From the NCBI RefSeq assembly GCF_000007005.1, contig NC_002754.1: a stretch of 64,000 bases of DNA; one strand, 5' to 3'. The position numbers and the translations under genes are program-made. The notes under the pieces are model-generated. The model ran no database searches, was not told the DNA's origin, and saw only the letters and a list, made by a program, of their open reading frames with translations. Below, piece by piece: positions 6,492 through 64,000 of the stretch; the first letter of the stretch is position 1; every line of letters starts with the position of its first letter. Source of the stretch: Saccharolobus solfataricus P2 (lineage in GTDB: Archaea > Thermoproteota > Thermoprotei_A > Sulfolobales > Sulfolobaceae).

Positions 6492-6528
6492 TTTACTGGT
6501 ACCAGTAATTTACTGGTACCAGTAATTT
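6492..6528. repeat. Tandem 17-bp repeat, each unit containing the perfect 16-bp palindrome TTACTGGTACCAGTAA
   Basis: The sequence TTTACTGGTACCAGTAA occurs twice, followed by TTT, filling the gap between the speB stop and the ATPase start. Confidence 0.95.
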
Positions 6529-7444
6529 AAAGATTTAATGAAAGTACGCTCATTCCTTCATAGATGATATTTGCGGCCAACATTGCTGTAATTTCGCTCA
6601 TATCATATGGTGGCGCAACCTCTACAACATCAAATCCAACTAGCTTATCAAATCTTAACTTTCTAACTATTTCAATAATTTCAAAACTGGTGAGGCCTCC
6701 AACTTCAGGTGTACCAGTCCCGGGAGCAAATGCCGGATCTACAACATCTATATCAATTGAGACGTGTGTTGGACCAGATAGGGAATTTATCTCTCTAATT
6801 ACAGTGTCTAAATTATACTTTAAATCTCTAATTGTAAAGCTCCTAATTCCCAATCTTTCCTTATCCCTCAGATCTTCCTTTGAGAAAGTTGAGGCTCTAA
6901 TCCCTCCTTGTACCGCTTCTTTAATTAGGCCTTCCTCGATTGCTCTCCTCAACCACGTGCCATGTGTATATTTCTTTCCCCAATAGGAATCCCAGAAATC
7001 GTAATGAGAATCAAAGTGTACGATATTTATTTTCCCAAACTTTTTATATAAGGTCCTTAAAATGGGTAACGTAATCGAATGATCTCCACCAGCAATAAAA
7101 GGTACTAGATTTTTCGATGATATTATTTCGTAGAGGCTAGTTTGTATTGCGTTCATTGTGTCTTCAATATACCCTGGAATAACATTTATATCTCCCATAT
7201 CACAAGCGTTAAGCTTATCAAAAGGATAAGTATCTAAGAATTGATTATAGGGTCTTAACAATCTAGATCCTTGCCTTATTCCCATAGGTCCAAATCTGGC
7301 TCCAGGTCTGTAAGTTACAGCGTCATCAAAAGGTATTCCTAAAAATGCAGCCTTTATCTCCTCATTTTTTTCACAAATTGGTAACCTACCAAAGGTAGAA
7401 ATTTGTGTGAAACGTGGAGATTTTAACGCGTCTAATTGTCTCAT
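6527..7444 (-). CDS. speB: Agmatinase (ureohydrolase family)
   Basis: Motifs GGDHSIT, HFDSHYD, SIDIDVVDPAFAPGTGTP and DVVEVAP. Confidence 0.92.
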   Translation of the reverse strand: MRQLDALKSPRFTQISTFGRLPICEKNEEIKAAFLGIPFDDAVTYRPGARFGPMGIRQGSRLLRPYNQFLDTYPFDKLNACDMGDINVIPGYIEDTMNAIQTSLYEIISSKNLVPFIAGGDHSITLPILRTLYKKFGKINIVHFDSHYDFWDSYWGKKYTHGTWLRRAIEEGLIKEAVQGGIRASTFSKEDLRDKERLGIRSFTIRDLKYNLDTVIREINSLSGPTHVSIDIDVVDPAFAPGTGTPEVGGLTSFEIIEIVRKLRFDKLVGFDVVEVAPPYDMSEITAMLAANIIYEGMSVLSLNL

Positions 7445-7887
7445 GATTACTATATTTTATTCTGCTCATACTTGAAGTTAACGTTGAAAGATGGACTAAC
7501 TCACGCTTTGTGGTCTTATTGGATTTTCACAAAGACTTAAGAGGTATTGCAAAGCTAATGGGCATGGGTTACAATTCTGTTATTTTAGTATAAATCGTAT
7601 AAAGTATTCGTTTATTTCCAAATTCAACATATGATTTAGATTTTGAAAAAAAGAAGATGCCGCAATTCCTTAGTCTTTTCCCAAAAATTTGGTTACGCAA
7701 TTGAAACATTTGACGAAAGTGAATTAGAGGAATTTAAACTGAGTTTCGAATGAATGAAATTATGCTTATATTCAGCTAAATTGAAATAAAAACTATAATA
7801 TAATAGTTTAGTGTAAAGTTACTTAATAGACCAATTAAGTAGTTTGTTTATCTAATTTTAAGAAGTGTGCGGAGGGAAAAATTTTAT

Positions 7888-8209
7888 CTTAACGGGGGTT
7901 AAGGGATCTTCCGCCCCCTTCCTCAAGGGGATGGATAGCCCCCTTATATAAAAGTTTTTTAACTAATCTAAATCATATATTTCTTACATGATAGTTACCA
8001 ATGGAGTAAGCGTCACCGAGACGCCTTGGTTAAAGCGAGGGTCAATGAGGTACGCCTCTGCTCCAGACAGTAGCCCCAAAGGCGGTAACAGTGTCATGGT
8101 TAATGAGTTTCGTTCGGGGTCGGAACGACCCTTAGTGTGGAGCTCTGCCCTCTACCGCTGGCAAGGTGGGGGTATGAGGCAGGAAGCCTTGTAGGGCAGG
8201 GTAGTTCAC
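7888..8209 (+). mobile_element. Non-autonomous IS200/IS605-derived element (~322 bp, SMN1-like) retaining the tnpB 3' end/omega-RNA scaffold
   Basis: Left-end hairpin (CCCCTT-CCTC-AAGGGG inside GGGGTTA...TAGCCCC) and right end GGGTAGTTCAC. The 3' ~100 bp is homologous to the tnpB element ends at 60345-60463. No transposase. Left boundary uncertain by a few bp. Confidence 0.8.
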
Positions 8210-8486
8210 TCGTATGTCTTGCCCTTAATAACGGTAATTTTCACCTCACATGGTATGTCTTTCGTAATTTGTGTATTGTCAGTACCTCTTGGTAGATAGC
8301 TTAATCTCGTTGAAGCTCGTATCTGACTTCCTACGATGTTGGAATTCATATCTGCTATAGAAGTTTTCTACTAAACTGTAGTATTATATGTCCAAATATT
8401 TTTCCATATAGAAGATTATCCAGATTAATCTATTAGAATTTGATTAATTTTACACTATTATTATTTACACTATTATTAGGTAATTT

Positions 8487-9146
8487 TTACTTCTTGGTGT
8501 TAACTAACATCTTAGCAGTATTGAATATTTCAATCAGCATATTTATAGTTAATCTGCCGGTCTTCATGTTCCTCGGACTTGGATGATAACTTCCTACTAA
8601 CCATATTATTGACATATCTGGTTTTACAACCTTCACTAAAGCACCGTGATAAAATCTAACGTTAGGAACATTATAGCCAATTTTCTTAAAAACGTAAATG
8701 AGGGAATCCCACGCAATTTTACCCAATGCTATATAGACCTTTGTGTTTTTTAGTATTCTTACCTCCTCTTCCAAGAATACTGAACAGTTAATTATCTCGT
8801 CCTTATTGGGTTTATTTTGTGGAGGTGCACATTTCACTGCAGAGGTTATATAAACGTTAAACAGTTTCAAGCCATCATCTTTGGATACTGAAAATGGTTG
8901 ATTTGAAAGTCCAACTGCATATAATGCGTTGGCTAGATTGTTTGAACTTTCATCCCCGGTAAACATTCTTCCAGTCCTATTTCCTCCGTTTCCTGCAGGA
9001 GCTAAACCTACAATTACTATTTCTGCATCAATTTGACCGTTTGGTGGAACAGGCTTTTTCCAATAGTTGTCGGGAAAGGATTTTCTATACTGTGTGAGTC
9101 TAGGGCATTTGTCACACGCAATTAGTCTAGATATGAAGTTTTCCAC
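8487..9146 (-). CDS. udg: Uracil-DNA glycosylase, family 5 (Fe-S)
   Basis: Motifs CDKCPRL, GLAPAGNGGNRTGRMFTGD, AVKCAPPQNKP and YHPSPRN. Confidence 0.9.
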   Translation of the reverse strand: MENFISRLIACDKCPRLTQYRKSFPDNYWKKPVPPNGQIDAEIVIVGLAPAGNGGNRTGRMFTGDESSNNLANALYAVGLSNQPFSVSKDDGLKLFNVYITSAVKCAPPQNKPNKDEIINCSVFLEEEVRILKNTKVYIALGKIAWDSLIYVFKKIGYNVPNVRFYHGALVKVVKPDMSIIWLVGSYHPSPRNMKTGRLTINMLIEIFNTAKMLVNTKK

Positions 9147-56631: not shown

Positions 56632-56785
56632 ATTCAAGTCTCCTTTGCGAATTGCAATTTGTAAATAATACTGTTGTAAAAATGTTAATATTGGTAGTCA
56701 TGCATCTCCGCCAGTTAGTCGTCTTCAATTAGTTAATTTCGTAGTAATCTTTAAAATAAACTGAATTCACAATGGCTAACTGAAT
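56632..56785. repeat. 154-bp perfect inverted repeat, left arm
   Basis: The reverse complement matches 58359-58512 at all 154 positions (checked by hand). Confidence 0.95.
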
Positions 56786-56992
56786 CTCCCTAAAAAGCTT
56801 CTAATGTAGTGTTATCGGGAGGCTATAGATAAAAATCCGAAAAATAATAATTACGCACTAATTTTAAAATTTTCCAGTACAGTATTATAGTAGGAAAATG
56901 GAAATTTCTAATTAAGTAGGTTTCCCTATATTATGATATTCCACTGGTGTGAGCAAGCTGTTAATAGAAGTAGAAGGATGATGGACTACTGT

Positions 56993-57292
56993 TTAGACTG
57001 TAACACATTTGCATAACTTTTAAATACTTTTAATCATTTCACAATATGATCTTTATTATGATTATGTTTATATATTATTTCCTCTACATTATAAATTGAT
57101 GAACCCCATACTGATGACGGGCTATGCTCACGAGGTATTGGGGGCGACAAATACGGATGGGAGGGTAGTGGTGTTTCCCTCGACTAGCCCCAATGAGTTG
57201 AGGGTGAGTGTGTATGAGCCCTCAAGAGGGGTGCCCGTGGCGGAATTAGAAGTAGTTAAAAGTAAGCAGAAGTTACGCCACGGGTAAACACT
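56993..57292 (+). mobile_element. 300-bp non-autonomous element, copy 2
   Basis: 298/300 identical to 1144-1443. Confidence 0.75.
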
Positions 57293-57367: not shown

Positions 57368-57808
57368 TTACTTATTCCTTTTCTCTTCATATAACTTCTT
57401 TGCATATTCCAATATTTCCTCAGCAATTTTAATTGATTGTTGACCATCATAAGCTGAATAGAGTAGTTCAGGAGGAGTATTAGTTTCTTCATCACCATAC
57501 ATTGATAGTTCCCTTTCTTTCCTTAGGGATCTCGAGTATGAGGCAAAAATATCTATCTTTTCTTTAAACCATTGTGGAAATTTGTCTGTATTATTTTTTA
57601 ATATTGGACCTACATCATGAAATTTGGGTGGTTCTATATTAACCAATCTAAGACATGCTTTAAGAGAGAGCTCTACAGCTTCTTGACAAAGTCTTACTAC
57701 AATGTTATATTTCTTTCTTTCATATTCTGTTTTAGCTAAATCTAATCTTTCTTCAGCTTGTGTAATATATGAAAATGCTAAGGAATCAAAGTTCAACCGT
57801 TTCACCAA
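57368..57808 (-). CDS. HEPN-domain protein (toxin-like partner of MNT)
   Basis: QAEERL...YNIVVRLCQEAVELSLKACL, HDV and RELSMYG are typical of the COG2250-type HEPN. Confidence 0.85.
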   Translation of the reverse strand: MVKRLNFDSLAFSYITQAEERLDLAKTEYERKKYNIVVRLCQEAVELSLKACLRLVNIEPPKFHDVGPILKNNTDKFPQWFKEKIDIFASYSRSLRKERELSMYGDEETNTPPELLYSAYDGQQSIKIAEEILEYAKKLYEEKRNK

Positions 57809-58310
57809 ACCCTGAATCCTTTTTAAGTATCCAATACCATCTCTTACCCATCCTTACTCTCTCAGCACCTAATTCCATAAGCCTCCCCTTTAATTTTTGC
57901 AATATCTTAGTGAAGAATTGGTCCTTATCGTAGAGAATTACAGCGTCATATACCATATCTAGATAAAGAGGTGAAATCTTTCCCGCTTCCTCGGGAGTTT
58001 TAAGAATGGGAGAAAGTGATATGTAATAACCCTTACTCCAATACTCATCTAAATTTAACTTATCCTCGACCTTGGTCTCAAACAATCTAATTCTTTTAAG
58101 TATACCGTCCATAGGTAAATTATCTATAACTATCAATAAATCTACATCACTATCGTTTCTATTATCTCCCCTAGCAACGCTCCCATAAAGTACTACCGAT
58201 ATCAGATCATCTTTAAATTCCTCTCTCATTATTTTGACCATGTCATTGAGCAACTTAGCATAAGGCTCCTTAATCATATGATATATAAATCCTAAAAATC
58301 TAATAAACAT
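57786..58310 (-). CDS. Minimal nucleotidyltransferase (MNT) antitoxin-like protein
   Basis: LYGSVARGDNRNDSDVDLL (GS-X10-DXD). Overlaps the HEPN start. The true start is probably the internal ATG (MIKEPY). Confidence 0.88.
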   Translation of the reverse strand: MFIRFLGFIYHMIKEPYAKLLNDMVKIMREEFKDDLISVVLYGSVARGDNRNDSDVDLLIVIDNLPMDGILKRIRLFETKVEDKLNLDEYWSKGYYISLSPILKTPEEAGKISPLYLDMVYDAVILYDKDQFFTKILQKLKGRLMELGAERVRMGKRWYWILKKDSGFGETVEL

Positions 58311-58358
58311 GTCGTTTTATACTTAAAACGAAATCATAGTGGGATTATATTTATGGTT

Positions 58359-58512
58359 ATTCAGTTAGCCATTGTGAATTCAGTTTATTTTAAAGATTAC
58401 TACGAAATTAACTAATTGAAGACGACTAACTGGCGGAGATGCATGACTACCAATATTAACATTTTTACAACAGTATTATTTACAAATTGCAATTCGCAAA
58501 GGAGACTTGAAT
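58359..58512. repeat. 154-bp perfect inverted repeat, right arm
   Basis: Exact reverse complement of 56632-56785. Confidence 0.95.
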
Positions 58513-58936: not shown

Positions 58937-59012
<76 letters not shown>

Positions 59013-59143
59013 TTGTTACTAAAGAAAGGATAGCCACAAAATTTATCTCTACTAGTTTTTGGGTGGCGAATAATCTCACTGGTAAGAGATAAATAGCTAG
59101 TTATAAAAGAATTTTTACATATCAGTGGGAGATTTCATTTATA

Positions 59144-60463
59144 ACAGACGGGGGTTCAAAGGGGGCGGAAAACTTCTCTTTGAGATGAATCCCTTTGTAG
59201 AAAAGTTAAAAATAGGAAAATAACGAAATACACATCAATACCCACCTTAGGGTTTCGCTTCCGTGCATACACTGACGAACAAACCCTTAGGGCGTTAAAG
59301 GCCCAGTTGAAGTTAGCGTGCGAAATCTACAACACCTTAAGGTGGGCAGACATATACTTTTACCAAAGGGATGGGAAAGGACTAACACAAACTGAGTTAA
59401 GACAGTTGGCTCTAGATCTGAGAAAACAAGATGATGAGTATAAGCAAGTCTACTCGCAAGTAGTTCAACAAATAGCTGACCGTTACTACGAAGCTAGACA
59501 GAGGTTTTTCGAAGGTTTAGCACGTTTCCCGAAAGAAAAGAAACCTCACAAATACTACTCCCTAGTCTATCCCCAGTATGGTTGGAAAATACTTCAAGTT
59601 AGAGAAATAAGAAAAGGCAAGAAGAAACTAATAACGCTTAAACTATCAAATCTTGGTACGTTCAAGGTAATAGTTCACCGAGACTTTCCCCTTGACAAAG
59701 TAAAGAGGGTAGTAGTGAAGCTAACAAGATCTGAGAGGATTTACATCACTTTCGTAGTTGATCACGAATTCCCCAAGTTACCTAACACTGGTAAGGTAGT
59801 GGCGATAGATGTTGGCATAGAGAAGTTGATCGTAACGTCGGATGGTGAATATTTCCCCAATCTGAGACCTTACGAGAAAGCGTTATGGAAAGTGAAGCAT
59901 CTACACAGAGAACTTTCAAGGAAGAAGTTTCTTTCAAATAACTGGTTTAAGGCTAAGGTTAAGCTTGCTAGGGCTTATGAGTATTTGAAGAATCTAAGAA
60001 CGGATCTTTATATGAAGTTGGGTAAGTGGTTTGCTGAGCATTATGACGTTGTGGTGATGGAGGACATTCATGTTAAGCAGTTGATAGGTAAGTCATTAAG
60101 GTCTCTGAGGAGGAGATTGAGTGACGTCGCGTTCAGCGAGCTTAGAGATTTGATTAAGTATCAGTTGGAGAAATACGGTAAGAAACTCATCCTGGTCAAC
60201 CCAGCATACACTTCCAAAACTTGTGCTAGGTGCGGGTACGTAAAAGAAGATCTGTCTCTATCTGATCGTGTTTTCGTTTGTTCCAACTGTGGTTGGATTG
60301 CAGATCGTGACTATAATGCTTCTCTTAACATTTTGAAGGGTGCGGGGTCGGAGCGATCCTTAGTGCCTGTGGAACTCCGCCCTCTACCAGTACCAGCACT
60401 TCGGTACTGGCATGGCAGAGCTGTGAAGTAGGAAGCTCCCTCATTTATGAGGGGGTAGCTCAC
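59144..60463 (+). mobile_element. IS200/IS605-family tnpB-only (IS1341-type, ISC1316-like) element, copy 1
   Basis: Near-identical to 62567-63892. Left-end hairpin follows TTATA; right-end hairpin CTCCCTCAT-TT-ATGAGGGGG is followed by TAGCTCAC. No TIR or TSD. Confidence 0.9.
59238..60431 (+). CDS. tnpB: TnpB RNA-guided nuclease with start codon ATG mutated to ATA
   Basis: RuvC motifs AIDVG, VMEDI and DRDYNA, plus zinc finger CARCG...CSNCG. The codon equivalent to the copy 2 ATG is ATA (59238-59240). The first alternative start is TTG at 59307. Confidence 0.85.
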
Positions 60464-60480
60464 ATAGTACTAGTGGTAAT
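60340..60480 (+). ncRNA. Predicted omega-RNA/reRNA of TnpB copy 1 (scaffold to 60463, then guide ATAGTACTAGTGGTAAT)
   Basis: TnpB guide RNAs are known to overlap the ORF 3' end and right end. Stems GGTCG/CGATC, CCAGTACC/GGTACTGG and the right-end hairpin are present. Boundaries are approximate. Confidence 0.65.
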
Positions 60481-60536
60481 TTTAAACTAACGGCTCTGCA
60501 TAAATTTTAATATGGTGGTATACCAATATATTATAT

Positions 60537-60782
60537 ATGGAAACAGTTACAATAAAGGTTGATAAAGAGATAGCCGAGCTGATAAAAAAGATGATCTCAC
60601 TGGGAATTGCAAAATCAAAGAATGAAGCGGTTAATATGTTAATTGAATACGGGAGAGCTGAAATAGAGAGGAGAGTTAAAGAAGAGGAGGAAGTGAAGAA
60701 ACTTGTAGAAAAATGGCTCCAAGAGGGTTTTCCATATAAAAACCTTGATACTTCAGATTTAAGGGAAGAAAGATATGGATGA
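60537..60782 (+). CDS. vapB: VapB-type antitoxin (ribbon-helix-helix)
   Basis: METVTIKVDKEIAELIKK...SKNEAVNMLI. Overlaps the PIN gene start. Confidence 0.8.
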   Translation: METVTIKVDKEIAELIKKMISLGIAKSKNEAVNMLIEYGRAEIERRVKEEEEVKKLVEKWLQEGFPYKNLDTSDLREERYG

Positions 60783-61194
60783 GATAAAGTACGTTGATAC
60801 TAACGTTATTCTATCACTGGTTGAAGAAGATGCTAATTTTGAAAGAGCTAGAAAATTAAAGGGGTTAACTAATCTGGTTACTGGAGAGATAACTCAGCTG
60901 GAACTCAATTCTTTTTACTCTAGGAAGTTGAAAGATGAAATAAAGGCAAGAGCTTCAACACTTTACTTACTACAATTTGTGAACGTTAAGGTTATTGAGG
61001 CTGACTGGAATAAACTATTTAGAAAAGCGTTAGATCTTTCCTATAAACTTGAGCTTAAAACCTTGGATGTCTTACAGATAGCCTCAGCATTTCTTTCAGG
61101 TTCAAAGATATTCATTACCTTCGATAAGGAGATTATCAGCAAAAGGGAGATTGTAAAAAAGTACACAGGAGTTAGTGTAGACGATTTAACTTAA
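60775..61194 (+). CDS. vapC: VapC PIN-domain toxin
   Basis: Motifs YVDTNVIL, TQLELNS, LDVLQIASA and FITFDKE. Confidence 0.88.
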   Translation: MDEIKYVDTNVILSLVEEDANFERARKLKGLTNLVTGEITQLELNSFYSRKLKDEIKARASTLYLLQFVNVKVIEADWNKLFRKALDLSYKLELKTLDVLQIASAFLSGSKIFITFDKEIISKREIVKKYTGVSVDDLT

Positions 61195-61217
61195 TATGAC
61201 TCCTCCACGTCCTGAAC

Positions 61218-62409
61218 GATACTCCCAAAAATCACCTCCTTAAAAATAAACCTATAGTATTAGTAAGCGTTTCCTCCAATTTATTTAAATAAATCTCTAT
61301 CTCAGATATATTTTCAATAATTTTTGAAATTAGTGATTTGAAAGTCCTCATTTTCACGTTATCCTTGAGGGTAGTGTACAAGGAGTAAACGAGCACGTCA
61401 AGTAAGAAGATTAACATGCGGAAAATGAACTTTGTTGAACACGTAAAGGGGAGGAACGATTTAACACTCCTATAAGACGTTTCTATCGGATTCCTCACCT
61501 TGTTACTCCAAGACCTTATTCTTGGGTAAATCGAGATTTGTAGCCCTGGCGAAGTAAACAACCTCCTTCTTTTCCTCTTGATCTTCTCCCTACGATACAC
61601 GATCAGCCTAAATTTAACCTGCTCATCCTTACTATGCCTCTTACTATTCGTAACATATTCACCATCAAACTCCTCGTAGATCTTGACATCATCAACGGGA
61701 ACTCCAATAATGTAGTTGAACTGGGATATGAATTTTATCACCTCAACCGTGTAAAATCCTGCATCAAGTGCTATCAGTTTAATCCTAAATCCCATTGCAA
61801 CCACTTGTTCAATCAAGATCTTGACAATCTCATCCTTTGTCATTAACTTGCGGTATGAAGGCGAGTATGAGGATTTTTACCTCGTATTTCGTCGTTGTTG
61901 CGTAGTTCCACGAGTATCCCTTTTCTGAGCTTCCCAAACCTTCTACAAGTTTTCCGTACCAGCTTGTCCAATCTAATGATAGATCCATCTCCTCCACGCC
62001 CTTAAGCGTTTCGAGTGAGATTTGTTTCACTTATTCCAGTATTTTTTCCGCTACTTGTAATCCTTGTTCTTCAACGTAATTCCTCACTGTTTGTGGTGAT
62101 ACGTTGTAAGCTTTGGAAACGTTTTTCCACTGAATCGTTGTGTAATGATGTCGAGACCAAGGTTTTTGTAGCTTCCTCTCCCTTCCTCCCGTGGAAGTTA
62201 ATCATGGAAAGTAATTTATACACTATTTGTTGAATGTTTAATGAGGGAATTGGCATACCGTAAACCCTTATGGTAATACCGATTTTCTCGCTTTAAACCT
62301 TTTTTTTCCAATTTATTGGATTCTTAATGTTGTTATAAATTTGGTTATGTTCAACAAATTTAATATTGCTCAATCAGAATTATTTTTGTAAGATGATTTT
62401 GGGAATACC
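61218..62409 (-). pseudogene. Decayed ISH3-family IS (ISC1200/ISC1225-like) with frameshifted DDE transposase
   Basis: The transposase is split over 62256-62071, 62030-61830 and 61843-61232 (LSMINFHGRKGEE, LDWTSWYGK, LIALDAGFY, RNPIETSYR). Imperfect IR GATACTCCCAAAAATCACC (61218) versus GGTATTCCCAAAATCATC (reverse complement of 62392-62409). Exact IS name not verified. Confidence 0.8.
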
Positions 62410-62549
62410 GAGAAGGGGCGAGACTTTCAACATTTTGTAAGTCAGCATAGGGATCTCATTTTTAGTGAAAATTATGGAATGAATCAAACGTATTAAAAAA
62501 TGAAATTCCCATGGTGAGATGAAGGAAAAAGTTTGTATATATATTGAAG

Positions 62550-62695
62550 TTCTAGTCTATATCAAGGTGAGCTACTCCCTCATAAATGAGGGAGCTTCCT
62601 ACTTCACAGCTCTGCCATGCCAGTACCGAAGTGCTGGTACTGGTAGAGGGCGGAGCTCCACAGGCACTAAGGATCGCTCCGACCCCGATCCACGT
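62550..62695 (-). ncRNA. Predicted omega-RNA of TnpB copy 2 (guide CTTGATATAGACTAGAA)
   Basis: Same scaffold as copy 1, with a perfect right-end hairpin CTCCCTCAT/ATGAGGGAG. Boundaries are approximate. Confidence 0.65.
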
Positions 62696-63892
62696 AAGAT
62701 GTTAAGAGAAGCATTATAGTCACGATCTGCAATCCAACCACAGTTGGAACAAACGAAAACACGATCAGATAGAGACAGATCTTCTTTTACGTACCCGCAC
62801 CTAGCACAAGTTTTGGAAGTGTATGCTGGGTTGACCAGGATGAGTTTCTTACCGTATTTCTCCAACTGATACTTAATCAAATCTCTAAGCTCGCTGAACG
62901 CGACGTCACTCAATCTCCTCCTCAGAGACCTTAATGACTTACCTATCAACTGCTTAACATGAATGTCCTCCATCACCACAACGTCATAATGCTCAGCAAA
63001 CCACTTACCCAACTTCATGTAAAGATCCGTTCTTAGATTCTTCAAATGCTCATAAGCCCTAGCAAGCTTAACCTTAGCCTTAAACCAATTATTAGAGAGG
63101 AATTTCTTCCTTGAAAGTTCTCTGTGTAGATGCTTCACTTTCCATAACGCCTTTTCAAGAGGTCTCAAATTAGGAAAATACTCACTATCTGACGTTACTA
63201 ACAACTTTTCTACACCAACATCTATCGCCACTACCTTACCAGTGTTAGGTAACTTGGGGAATTCGTAACCTTCTACTACGAAAGTGATGTAAATCCTCTC
63301 AGATCTTGTTAGCTTCACTACTACCCTCTTTACTTTGTCAAGGGGAAAGTCTCGGTGAACTATTACCTTGAACACACCTAGATTTGATAGTTTAAGCGTT
63401 ATTAGTTTCTTCTTGCTTCCTTTTCTTATTTCTCTAACTTGAAGTATTTTCCAACCATACTGGGGATAGACTAGGGAGTAGTATTTGTGAGGTTTCTTTT
63501 CTTTCGGGAAACGTGCTAAACCTTCGAAAAACCTCTGTCTAGCTTCGTAGTAACGGTCAGCTATTTGTTGAACTACTTGCGAGTAGACTTGCTTATACTC
63601 ATCATCTTGTTTTCTCAGATCTAGAGCCAACTGTCTTAACTCAGTTTGTGTTAGTCCTTTCCCATCCCTCTGATAGAAATAGATGTCTGCCCACCTTAAG
63701 GTGTTATATACCTCACATGCTAACTTCAACTGGGCCTTTAACGCCCTAAGGGTTTGTTCGTCAGTGTGTGCACGGAAGCGAAACCCTAAGGTGGGCATTG
63801 ATGTGTATTTCGTTATTTTCCTATTTTTAACTTTTCTACAAAGGGATCCATCTCAAAGAGAAGTTTTCCGCCCTCTTTGAACCCCCGTCTGT
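62567..63892 (-). mobile_element. IS200/IS605-family tnpB-only (ISC1316-like) element, copy 2, inverted relative to copy 1
   Basis: Shares ends with copy 1 (TTATA|ACAGACGGGGG ... AGCTCAC) and is 6 bp longer (two extra codons). Confidence 0.9.
62599..63798 (-). CDS. tnpB: TnpB RNA-guided nuclease, intact
   Basis: 399 aa with an ATG start. RuvC D-E-D triad and zinc finger are intact. Confidence 0.93.
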
Positions 63893-64000
63893 TATAATTC
63901 TCCTAGGGGCTCTCCCTCTGCATTATCAACGAGTGCTGAAGCGAGCGTTTTAGCAATTGTTACTGTCTGGTGAGTGTGGACTGCAATTTCGTTCATTTGA
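63892..64000 (-). CDS. 3' end of an unidentified gene entering from outside the window, terminating at the IS junction
   Basis: Open frame QMNEIAVHTHQTVTIAKTLASALVDNAEGEPLGEL*, whose TAA spans the TTATA|A junction. Confidence 0.45.
   Translation of the reverse strand, partial: QMNEIAVHTHQTVTIAKTLASALVDNAEGEPLGEL

Follow-up and report, generated by a model that had tools for sequence, protein, structure and literature searches.

A gene-less IS200/IS605 derivative of Saccharolobus solfataricus P2 with a 3' core homologous to the right ends of tnpB elements

Gene-less IS200/IS605 elements whose guide RNA is used in trans by the nuclease TnpB have already been described: palindrome-associated transposable elements (PATEs) often encode omega-RNAs to be used in trans by TnpB, and the TnpB systems of IS200/IS605 elements cut the empty donor site (Meers et al., 10.1101/2023.03.14.532601). 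In Sulfolobus islandicus, the guide of TnpB begins directly after UUCAC, the native site flanked by UUCAC escapes cutting, and the nuclease works with a right-end RNA (reRNA) that is transcribed separately (PMC11043419). SMN1 and SMN2 of Sulfolobus are described as non-autonomous elements of 320 bp without inverted repeats that are mobilised by ISC1733 (Berkner & Lipps 2007, cited in PMC3718332 and PMC3839810). Here we describe a mini element of 322 bp located at positions 7888-8209 (plus strand) of a 64,000-nt stretch of the S. solfataricus P2 genome (contig NC_002754.1), hereafter the window. We regard it, on balance, as a non-autonomous element that arose by internal deletion from one of ISC1316 type, similar to PATEs and SMN elements, for which we propose an RNA-based mechanism of maintenance. 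An original prediction, made from the sequence alone, had interpreted this locus as a trans-acting guide cassette for TnpB. The trans-guide idea appears reasonable and was already published in general form; the mini family adds a case to those described.

Boundaries and family of the mini element

The segment 7888-8209 is a well delimited gene-less IS200/IS605 derivative. Most members of its family show a flanking TTTAT, followed by a shared build and then by unrelated flanking sequence. TTTAT closed the left flank in 14 of the 16 readable left junctions, the element opening with CTTAAC or CTTCTC, and this bore out the left boundary originally predicted at 7888. The interval originally given ran to 8230; the right boundary of the element lies at 8209 (...GGGTAGTTCAC), positions 8210-8230 corresponding to flanking DNA and to the would-be guide. 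The element ends with TAGTTCAC and has a GC content of 50% versus 36% in the window. The motif preceding full-length ISC1316-type elements was TTTAT or ATTAT, and the right flanks of family members were unrelated to TTTAT, so that there is no target-site duplication. As had been predicted, the element contains no transposase or nuclease gene: its sole open reading frame (ORF) encodes 68 amino acids (7988-8194), and all 31 relatives of this frame lacked a Pfam domain. No tnpA gene was seen within the window, and no Rfam family was matched, either at gathering thresholds over the whole window or at E <= 10 over 7700-8400.

The mini element lies in the spacer of 1042 bp that separates an arginase-family gene (6527-7444, minus strand) from a uracil-DNA glycosylase (UDG) gene (8487-9146, minus strand). 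The UDG gene is identical in LT549890.1 and in further genomes sharing this gene order. In relatives having a UDG of 84% identity (CP077713/15/17), the corresponding spacer is only 186 bp long and carries no such element, its intergenic DNA being too diverged from that of the window for a base-by-base alignment and thus for delimiting the exact empty site.

A two-anchor pattern derived from the right end gave three matches in Metallosphaera yellowstonensis, two full-length tnpB elements and one gene-less mini, its other matches being due to chance. The mini has an internal stretch (GGAGTAAGCGTCACYGAGACGCCTTGGTTAAAGCGAGGGTC...) in common with the window element that is absent from the tnpB elements. 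A 21-mer from this stretch, which belongs to a conserved module (Table 1), recovered 31 matches in metagenomes, corresponding to 29 mini elements (some cut by contig ends and one, L043, internally deleted) and to two CRISPR spacers. Complete minis were also found in M. yellowstonensis, Sulfodiicoccus acidiphilus and Sulfuracidifex metallicus, and at least 15 different insertion sites were counted across metagenomes and other genera. The alignments show the following common build: the flanking TTTAT is followed by the left end, an AT-rich stretch with TTTAAATA, an invariant ATG and the conserved module, then by a variable hairpin, the hairpin GGGTCGGAACGACCC, the motifs TTAGTGCCTGTGGAG...GAAGCAGGAAGCC, the right-end hairpin, TAGTTCAC and an unrelated flank.

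At least three copies are present at different sites in S. solfataricus P1, namely the window locus, L058 and L061, a lower bound reached via gene calls on the spurious ORF of the mini. L058 (LT549890.1, around 1.07 Mb) is nearly the same as the window copy and has an intact right-end hairpin; L061 (LT549890.1, around 1.31 Mb) lies beside a cas6 gene and has a left end of the consensus type. All three are preceded by TTTAT, have differing flanks and exhibit the same 4-nt gap (TTAG----TGTGGAG), which is a subfamily trait rather than a sign of decay.

Several rearrangements were observed within the family. L043 (5483-5630, minus strand) has kept the left end, promoter and 5' module and has lost the 3' core by a deletion between the GGGTCGGAACG hairpin and TAGTTC; internal deletions thus continue in this family. 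In another S. solfataricus-like assembly, L060 (1745-1915) has the same right flank as L058 (2250-2420), the left flank (…TTTAA|CTCTAAC) and the upstream genes being different, which suggests recombination between mini copies located at different loci. At two sites (L027/L030/L049 and L042), a piece of 16-27 nt from the right flank, where the would-be guide lies, has a second copy on the left side, some 25 nt upstream of TTTAT, as exemplified by L027 with GAAGTTGCATAAGAGAAT on both sides. The two CRISPR spacers (L031 333-373, L050 6003-6039; repeat GAATCCGGCTTGAAGGAATTGAAAG) are 41 nt long and identical to the 5' module (CCGAGACGCCTTGGTTAAAGCGAGGGTCTATGTGGTACGCC), and therefore hosts acquire spacers against the mini element. 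The protospacer in the mini is preceded by TCA, which we take to fit the TCN motif of one Sulfolobus CRISPR family.

Table 1. Features of the mini element and of the tnpB elements of the window, with the identity of each mini region to the family consensus
Feature	Position	Strand	Basis or remark	Identity, window copy	Identity, mean of other copies
TTTAT target site, presumed transposon-adjacent motif (TAM)	7883-7887	+	immediately precedes the element		
Left end: CTTAAC-GGGGGTTAAGGG..., inner hairpin, then GATGGATAGCCCCCTT	7888-7947	+	aligned to the family and to full-length tnpB left ends	71%	81%
AT-rich putative former tnpB promoter and ATG	7948-7990	+	aligned to the family and to full-length elements	48% (promoter region)	83%
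Mini-specific conserved 5' module, ~80 nt	7988-8065	+	predicted long hairpin GGAGUA...UGCUCC, 8003-8064 (~62 nt)	88%	97%
Variable region	8066-8113	+	small hairpins differ among subfamilies	43%	88%
3' core of the omega-RNA scaffold	8114-8209	+	hairpin GGGTCGGAACGACCC at 8117-8131; ends UAGUUCAC	78%	91%
Right end, shortened hairpin	8185-8209	+	compared with the intact sibling L058; DNA folds	69%	85%
3' flank, would-be guide TCGTATGTCTTGCCCTTAAT	8210-8229	+	position inferred from S. islandicus TnpB (PMC11043419)		
ISC1316-type tnpB-only element, intact-looking TnpB at 62602-63798	62567-63893	-	candidate nuclease supplier		
Second ISC1316-type element	59143-60463	+	TnpB 96% identical; ATA (59238-59240) replaces the ATG start		

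The mini RNA and its kinship with tnpB elements

The last ~108 nt of the mini match, both in sequence and in covarying structure, the 3' ends of ISC1316-type elements, which carry tnpB only; those of the two such elements of the window are among them. The homology to the tnpB ends of the window, already proposed in the original prediction, was recovered by blastn (E-values of 1.7e-9 and 7e-8 over 47-49 nt) and with R1, a covariance model covering the entire mini RNA (72.8 bits for 62567-63893 and 66.5 bits for 59143-60463). R1 gave 179.9 bits for the window mini (over 7981-8209), 288 for the Metallosphaera mini, 200-292 for the complete metagenomic minis, 187 for the S. acidiphilus mini (L068) and 168 for the S. 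metallicus mini (L065). The full-length tnpB right ends obtained 116, 115, 94, 73 and 66 bits and aligned solely with model positions ~128-235, so that the omega-RNA core common to minis and tnpB elements corresponds to the 3' ~108 nt only. The mini RNA occupies the same position as in tnpB elements, with its 3' end at the right-end boundary and the terminal UUCAC kept.

An alignment of 22 distinct mini copies (A3) was folded with RNAalifold and yielded 63 pairs, with standard pairs in 98.3% of the cells. Compensatory changes were observed in 11 pairs; shuffling of the columns gave 5.4 +/- 1.2 such pairs, with no shuffle out of 500 attaining 11, and slid controls gave at most 4. The changes observed were located in the 3' domain, namely in the GGGUCGG hairpin, in the helix formed by columns 166-171/205-210 and in the right-end hairpin. 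True compensatory swaps from C-G to G-C occurred at the GGGUCGG hairpin in 8 of the 22 family members; the difference on which the original prediction had relied (GGGTCG-GAA-CGACCC versus GGGTCG-GAG-CGATCC) is present as well and is a one-sided change from G-C to G.U. When eight full-length right ends were aligned, the same helices were predicted in the 3' domain, again with compensatory changes. The window RNA alone folded at -88.4 kcal/mol (z = -2.8). At the level of the family, the RNA domains are the constrained parts of the element (Table 1); all S. solfataricus copies of the locus being identical, the comparison of scaffold and remainder across strains could be made at this level only.

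Upstream of the 3' core, a TATA-like box (TTTTTTAA, 7955-7962) aligned with the TTTAAATA of the family, and the ATG at 7988-7990 was kept in every mini aligned (22 copies). Full-length elements of Metallosphaera and of the ATV2 virus have, after the left end, (A)TTTAAA.../TTATATAC and further on ...CTATTAATG, which is the tnpB start; the Metallosphaera mini has the left end, TTTAAATA and the stretch up to CTATTAATG in common with them. Since this stretch up to the ATG is kept and the ATG is found in all minis, the mini inherited the putative promoter and the start site of tnpB. The position of the stretch and the archaeal TATA consensus led us to predict promoter activity. The promoter, the ATG and the conserved 5' module had been overlooked in the original prediction, and its description of an element reduced to its ends plus the scaffold was thus too narrow: judging from the alignments, the mini has retained its left end, the promoter and start that once belonged to tnpB, the 5' module, the ~108-nt omega-RNA 3' core and the right end, and of the RNA only this 3' core is common with tnpB elements.

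The 5' module was found in four genera, Saccharolobus, Metallosphaera, Sulfuracidifex and Sulfodiicoccus, and had no counterpart in the tnpB genes examined (R1 positions 10-105). An origin from the tnpB coding sequence (CDS), suggested by a similarity seen by eye (CACTGACG...), was dropped (score of 18 versus 17.7 +/- 2.0 for shuffles). The helices of the module are almost invariant and covariation neither proves nor disproves the fold, which is a prediction of the model. We tentatively suggest, as a minority possibility, that the module could be a functional RNA domain replacing the gene-embedded half of the omega-RNA, in which case the minis would be free-standing guide-RNA genes with their own promoter exploiting a TnpB made elsewhere. 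If true, they would represent a natural stage in the separation of guide and nuclease, on the way from TnpB to CRISPR-Cas12, and the copies with a damaged right end would be fixed guide genes.

The invariant ATG downstream of a TATA-like box could also be read as the start of a small leaderless gene, with a functional peptide of ~70 residues conserved over its N-terminal ~27 residues (MAVTDGVSVTETPWLKRGSMWYASAPF). The ATG is the former tnpB start; its frame is open across the whole RNA in 19 of the 22 unique copies, compared with 33-45 codons for the other frames, and the changes in the module comprise 18 synonymous and 28 non-synonymous ones (expected synonymous fraction 0.235, p = 0.013), the other frames giving 13/30 and 10/35. 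However, past the module the frames differ according to subfamily (RSGSERPLV... in S. solfataricus, LGVGTTLSACG... in others), indel lengths are not divisible by three, the frame is closed early by stops in three copies, and the 31 relatives have no Pfam domain. In addition, the changes per codon position (17/10/19) show no third-position excess, and a structured RNA that is GC-rich will often be free of stops when the genome around it is AT-rich. We thus consider a coding role improbable.

Proposed mechanism, nuclease supply and guide

In the mechanism that we propose, the old tnpB promoter would direct the synthesis of an RNA of ~220 nt running through the right end into the flank, and the TnpB of full-length ISC1316-type elements would bind and perhaps trim its 3' core. 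This TnpB would then take the flank TCGTATGTCTTGCCC... as guide, and its sole natural target would be the empty site of the mini itself (TTTAT plus flank), as published for IS200/IS605 elements. The cutting of the empty site would favour re-copying of the mini, and the RNA would therefore serve the mini's own retention, whereas mobility would depend on a Y1 TnpA provided in trans.

A candidate supplier of the nuclease is the tnpB-only element of the minus strand (Table 1), whose TnpB contains the Pfam domains OrfB_IS605 and Cas12f1-like_TNB and could be aligned with ISDra2 TnpB (8exa) over residues 20-369, the DVG/MED/DRD RuvC motifs and the zinc finger being present. Its homologues are named ISC1316 family by their sources. 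The plus-strand copy may not make a full-length TnpB because ATA stands at the position of the start codon and the earliest of the in-frame starts listed, a TTG, is located 23 codons downstream. This copy lies ~130 bp downstream of a tRNA gene (58937-59011), and the two tnpB elements of the window are mutually inverted, bracketing 60464-62566. Compatibility of the resident TnpB with the mini RNA appears plausible.

Several observations weigh against the explanation proposed here. The upstream half of the mini RNA has no homology with that half of the tnpB omega-RNA which lies within the CDS, and S. islandicus TnpB7, which belongs to a different subfamily, required ~113 nt of CDS-derived RNA (PMC11043419), so that loading onto TnpB is not assured. 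The S. solfataricus minis also depart from the resident ISC1316 right ends by the 4-nt gap in TTAGTGCCTGTGGAG and by a different internal helix, the two being only 81-85% identical over ~47 nt, and blastn also matched the 3' part of the window mini, at 70.6%, with the tnpB 3' end of the ATV2 virus. With R1, the window copy (179.9 bits) scored below every complete mini from metagenomes and Metallosphaera that ends with TAGTTCAC (203-292 bits), and the S. metallicus copy alone came lower (168 bits). Finally, the ATG frame open in 19 of 22 copies and its mild synonymous excess (p = 0.013) would leave room for the coding role considered above as a minor rival.

The ends of the element are relevant to its present mobility. 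The element has no terminal inverted repeats. The family has clear hairpins in its left and right ends, the latter of 8-9 bp. The left-end hairpin noticed in the original prediction is present in the window copy (CCCCTT-CCTC-AAGGGG, 7915-7930) with a sequence departing from the family consensus, and the DNA fold of this end was weak (z = -0.6) compared with that of the Metallosphaera copy (L014; -17.1 kcal/mol, z = -5.2). A left-end segment of ~16 nt at 7900-7915 (GGGATCTTCCGCCCCC in the window copy and L058) is the reverse complement of GGGGGCGGAAGAYCCC (L061 and the remaining family), corresponding to a small inversion within the palindromic stem (alignment A4).

The absence of the 5' arm of the right-end hairpin had also been recognised, and comparison with L058 revealed a deletion of 5 nt in this arm or in the loop (GCCTTG-----TAGGGCAGGG versus GCCTTGTCCGTTAGGGCAGGG), the 3' arm GGGCAGGG (8194-8201) and the terminal TAGTTCAC (8202-8209) being kept. 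The intact L058 end (CCTTGTCC-GTTA-GGGCAGGG) folded into a 9-bp hairpin (-6.0 kcal/mol) and that of the window formed no such hairpin (-3.4 kcal/mol). This deletion should weaken recognition by TnpA and might entail a loss of mobility. However, the same 5-nt deletion is present in L061 with different flanks, which makes the description of the copy as immobilised doubtful: either the deleted form moved or the copies exchange sequence.

The shortened right-end hairpin, together with the off-consensus and weakly folding left-end hairpin, could indicate that the element is an inert relic, that is a decaying remnant whose RNA is not used by TnpB and which neither moves nor homes, the conservation of the family reflecting recent descent from active masters. 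The promoter region, only 48% identical to the consensus, and the R1 score, below those of all other complete minis from metagenomes and Metallosphaera that end with TAGTTCAC, go in the same direction, and the copy is identical in all S. solfataricus strains examined, so that selection is not measurable. Several points speak against this reading: the three S. solfataricus copies hardly differ along most of the element and show no decay scattered over it, the 4-nt gap and the other departures belong to the subfamily and are not private damage, the deletion allele occurs at two loci, and the 5' module (88%) and 3' core (78%) are the best-kept parts. This explanation is thus rather unlikely in our opinion, and we retain as the more probable one that of a non-autonomous element whose RNA would contribute to its own retention.

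The nature of the guides bears on a further alternative. The guide of each copy is whatever flanks its insertion, and that of the window copy should target the mini's own empty site if it is read as in S. islandicus. It was unique in the window, and nothing relevant matched it among 50,697 records of phages and 72,556 of plasmids, with no Sulfolobales virus or plasmid searched being hit; its only exact 20-mer match in IMG/VR lay on the contig of a bacterial phage and had no adjacent TTTAT, approximately as expected by chance. The original prediction had viewed the locus as an immobilised cassette providing its guide in trans and had grouped it with the 300-bp repeats of the window into a dispersed guide bank; on this reading the host would keep the cassette, and TnpB would be directed at other DNA such as viruses or plasmids. 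The dispersed copies (at least three in S. solfataricus P1), the damaged right end in two of these three, and the fact that a guide RNA made elsewhere is usable by TnpB (PMC11043419) would be consistent with such a bank. It appears nonetheless very improbable, the most so of the explanations considered here: the guides are merely the flanks of each insertion, the searches of viral and plasmid sequences found nothing beyond chance, the CRISPR spacers target the mini and hosts thus treat it as foreign, and the deletion allele at two loci speaks against simple immobilisation. The 300-bp repeats were not matched by R1 and have neither TTTAT nor an IS200/IS605-type left end.

These 300-nt direct repeats (1144-1443 and 56993-57292) are 99% identical, with an AT-rich 5' half and a GC-rich 3' half, and they close with a long hairpin (CCCGTGGCG...CGCCACGGG) and TAAACAC. 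No relatives were found in the plasmid and phage collections, one IMG/VR contig having their last ~20 nt only. A pair of 163-nt inverted repeats (56632-56794 and 58350-58512, 98% complementary) encloses one of them together with a nucleotidyltransferase-domain gene (57786-58310, minus strand), and this unit could be a composite cassette or one flanked by miniature inverted-repeat transposable elements (MITEs).

Significance and comparison with known systems

The mini family provides a set of defined and testable gene-less carriers of the TnpB omega-RNA 3' core in genetically tractable archaea. Its boundaries, its TTTAT target, a model of its RNA and its natural variants are now defined, the intact and shortened right ends occurring in one genome. 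The family lends itself to finding out what portion of the omega-RNA is needed by TnpB, to testing TnpB-driven homing as a protection for nuclease-less elements, and to testing the loss of the right-end hairpin without loss of guide function. The gain is a good model case and not a new concept, the general principle being already published; most worth following are the mini-specific 5' module and the natural pair of intact and shortened right ends.

The mini resembles the PATEs of Geobacillus stearothermophilus (10.1101/2023.03.14.532601) in that both IS200/IS605 ends are kept without protein genes, together with the right-end guide-RNA scaffold for a TnpB encoded elsewhere, TnpA being presumably needed in trans. 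Unlike PATEs, it is archaeal and derives from a tnpB-only element of ISC1316 type, with the tnpB promoter and start codon kept, and it contains the conserved 5' RNA module of ~80 nt (hairpin of ~62 nt), which has no counterpart in the parental gene.

With SMN1, the mini shares its size (322 versus 320 bp) and the lack of terminal inverted repeats. We identified two unannotated gene-less elements of 321 bp in the S. islandicus plasmid pHVE14 (L006, 2508-2828) and in Acidianus tailed spindle virus (ATSV; L007, ~2508-2828), which are preceded by TTTAA, end with GGGGTAGTTCAC and are called SMN1-like here by their fit to the published description. Their left end is 75% identical to that of the mini over ~80 nt, their last 11 nt (GGGTAGTTCAC) are the same, and they have the core motif CCUGUGGAG...GAAGCAGGAA in common with it. 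In contrast, the internal sequence of the mini is unrelated to theirs, R1 gives them only 27-30 bits, and the target of the mini is TTTAT instead of TTTAA, the target of these copies and of the IS605-type elements of S. islandicus; the parent of the mini is also of ISC1316 type, that of SMN1 being ISC1733. The likeness to SMN1-type elements, which the original prediction had mentioned, thus holds for the left ~80 nt and the last 11 nt but not for the interior and the target, and membership in the SMN1 family was rejected on this comparison with the SMN1-like copies. Since the pHVE14 and ATSV elements carry the core motifs GCCUGUGGAG...GAAGCAGGAA, the right-end hairpin and TAGTTCAC, SMN1-type elements probably carry the TnpB guide-RNA core too and travel with it on plasmids and viruses.

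The closest resemblance is to the ISC1316-type tnpB-only elements, whose 3' omega-RNA is also called sotRNA or reRNA, with which the mini has in common the left end, the promoter, the target motif and the 3' ~108 nt with its helices and terminal UCAC. It differs from them by the absence of tnpB and by the replacement of the CDS-embedded upstream RNA by the module and variable hairpin. Finally, as in CRISPR arrays, which are guide stores for Cas12, a descendant of TnpB, the guide DNA of the mini is physically apart from the nuclease gene. Unlike these arrays, the mini is devoid of repeats and spacers and has a single guide, set by its insertion site and not acquired from invaders, whose predicted target is its own empty site.

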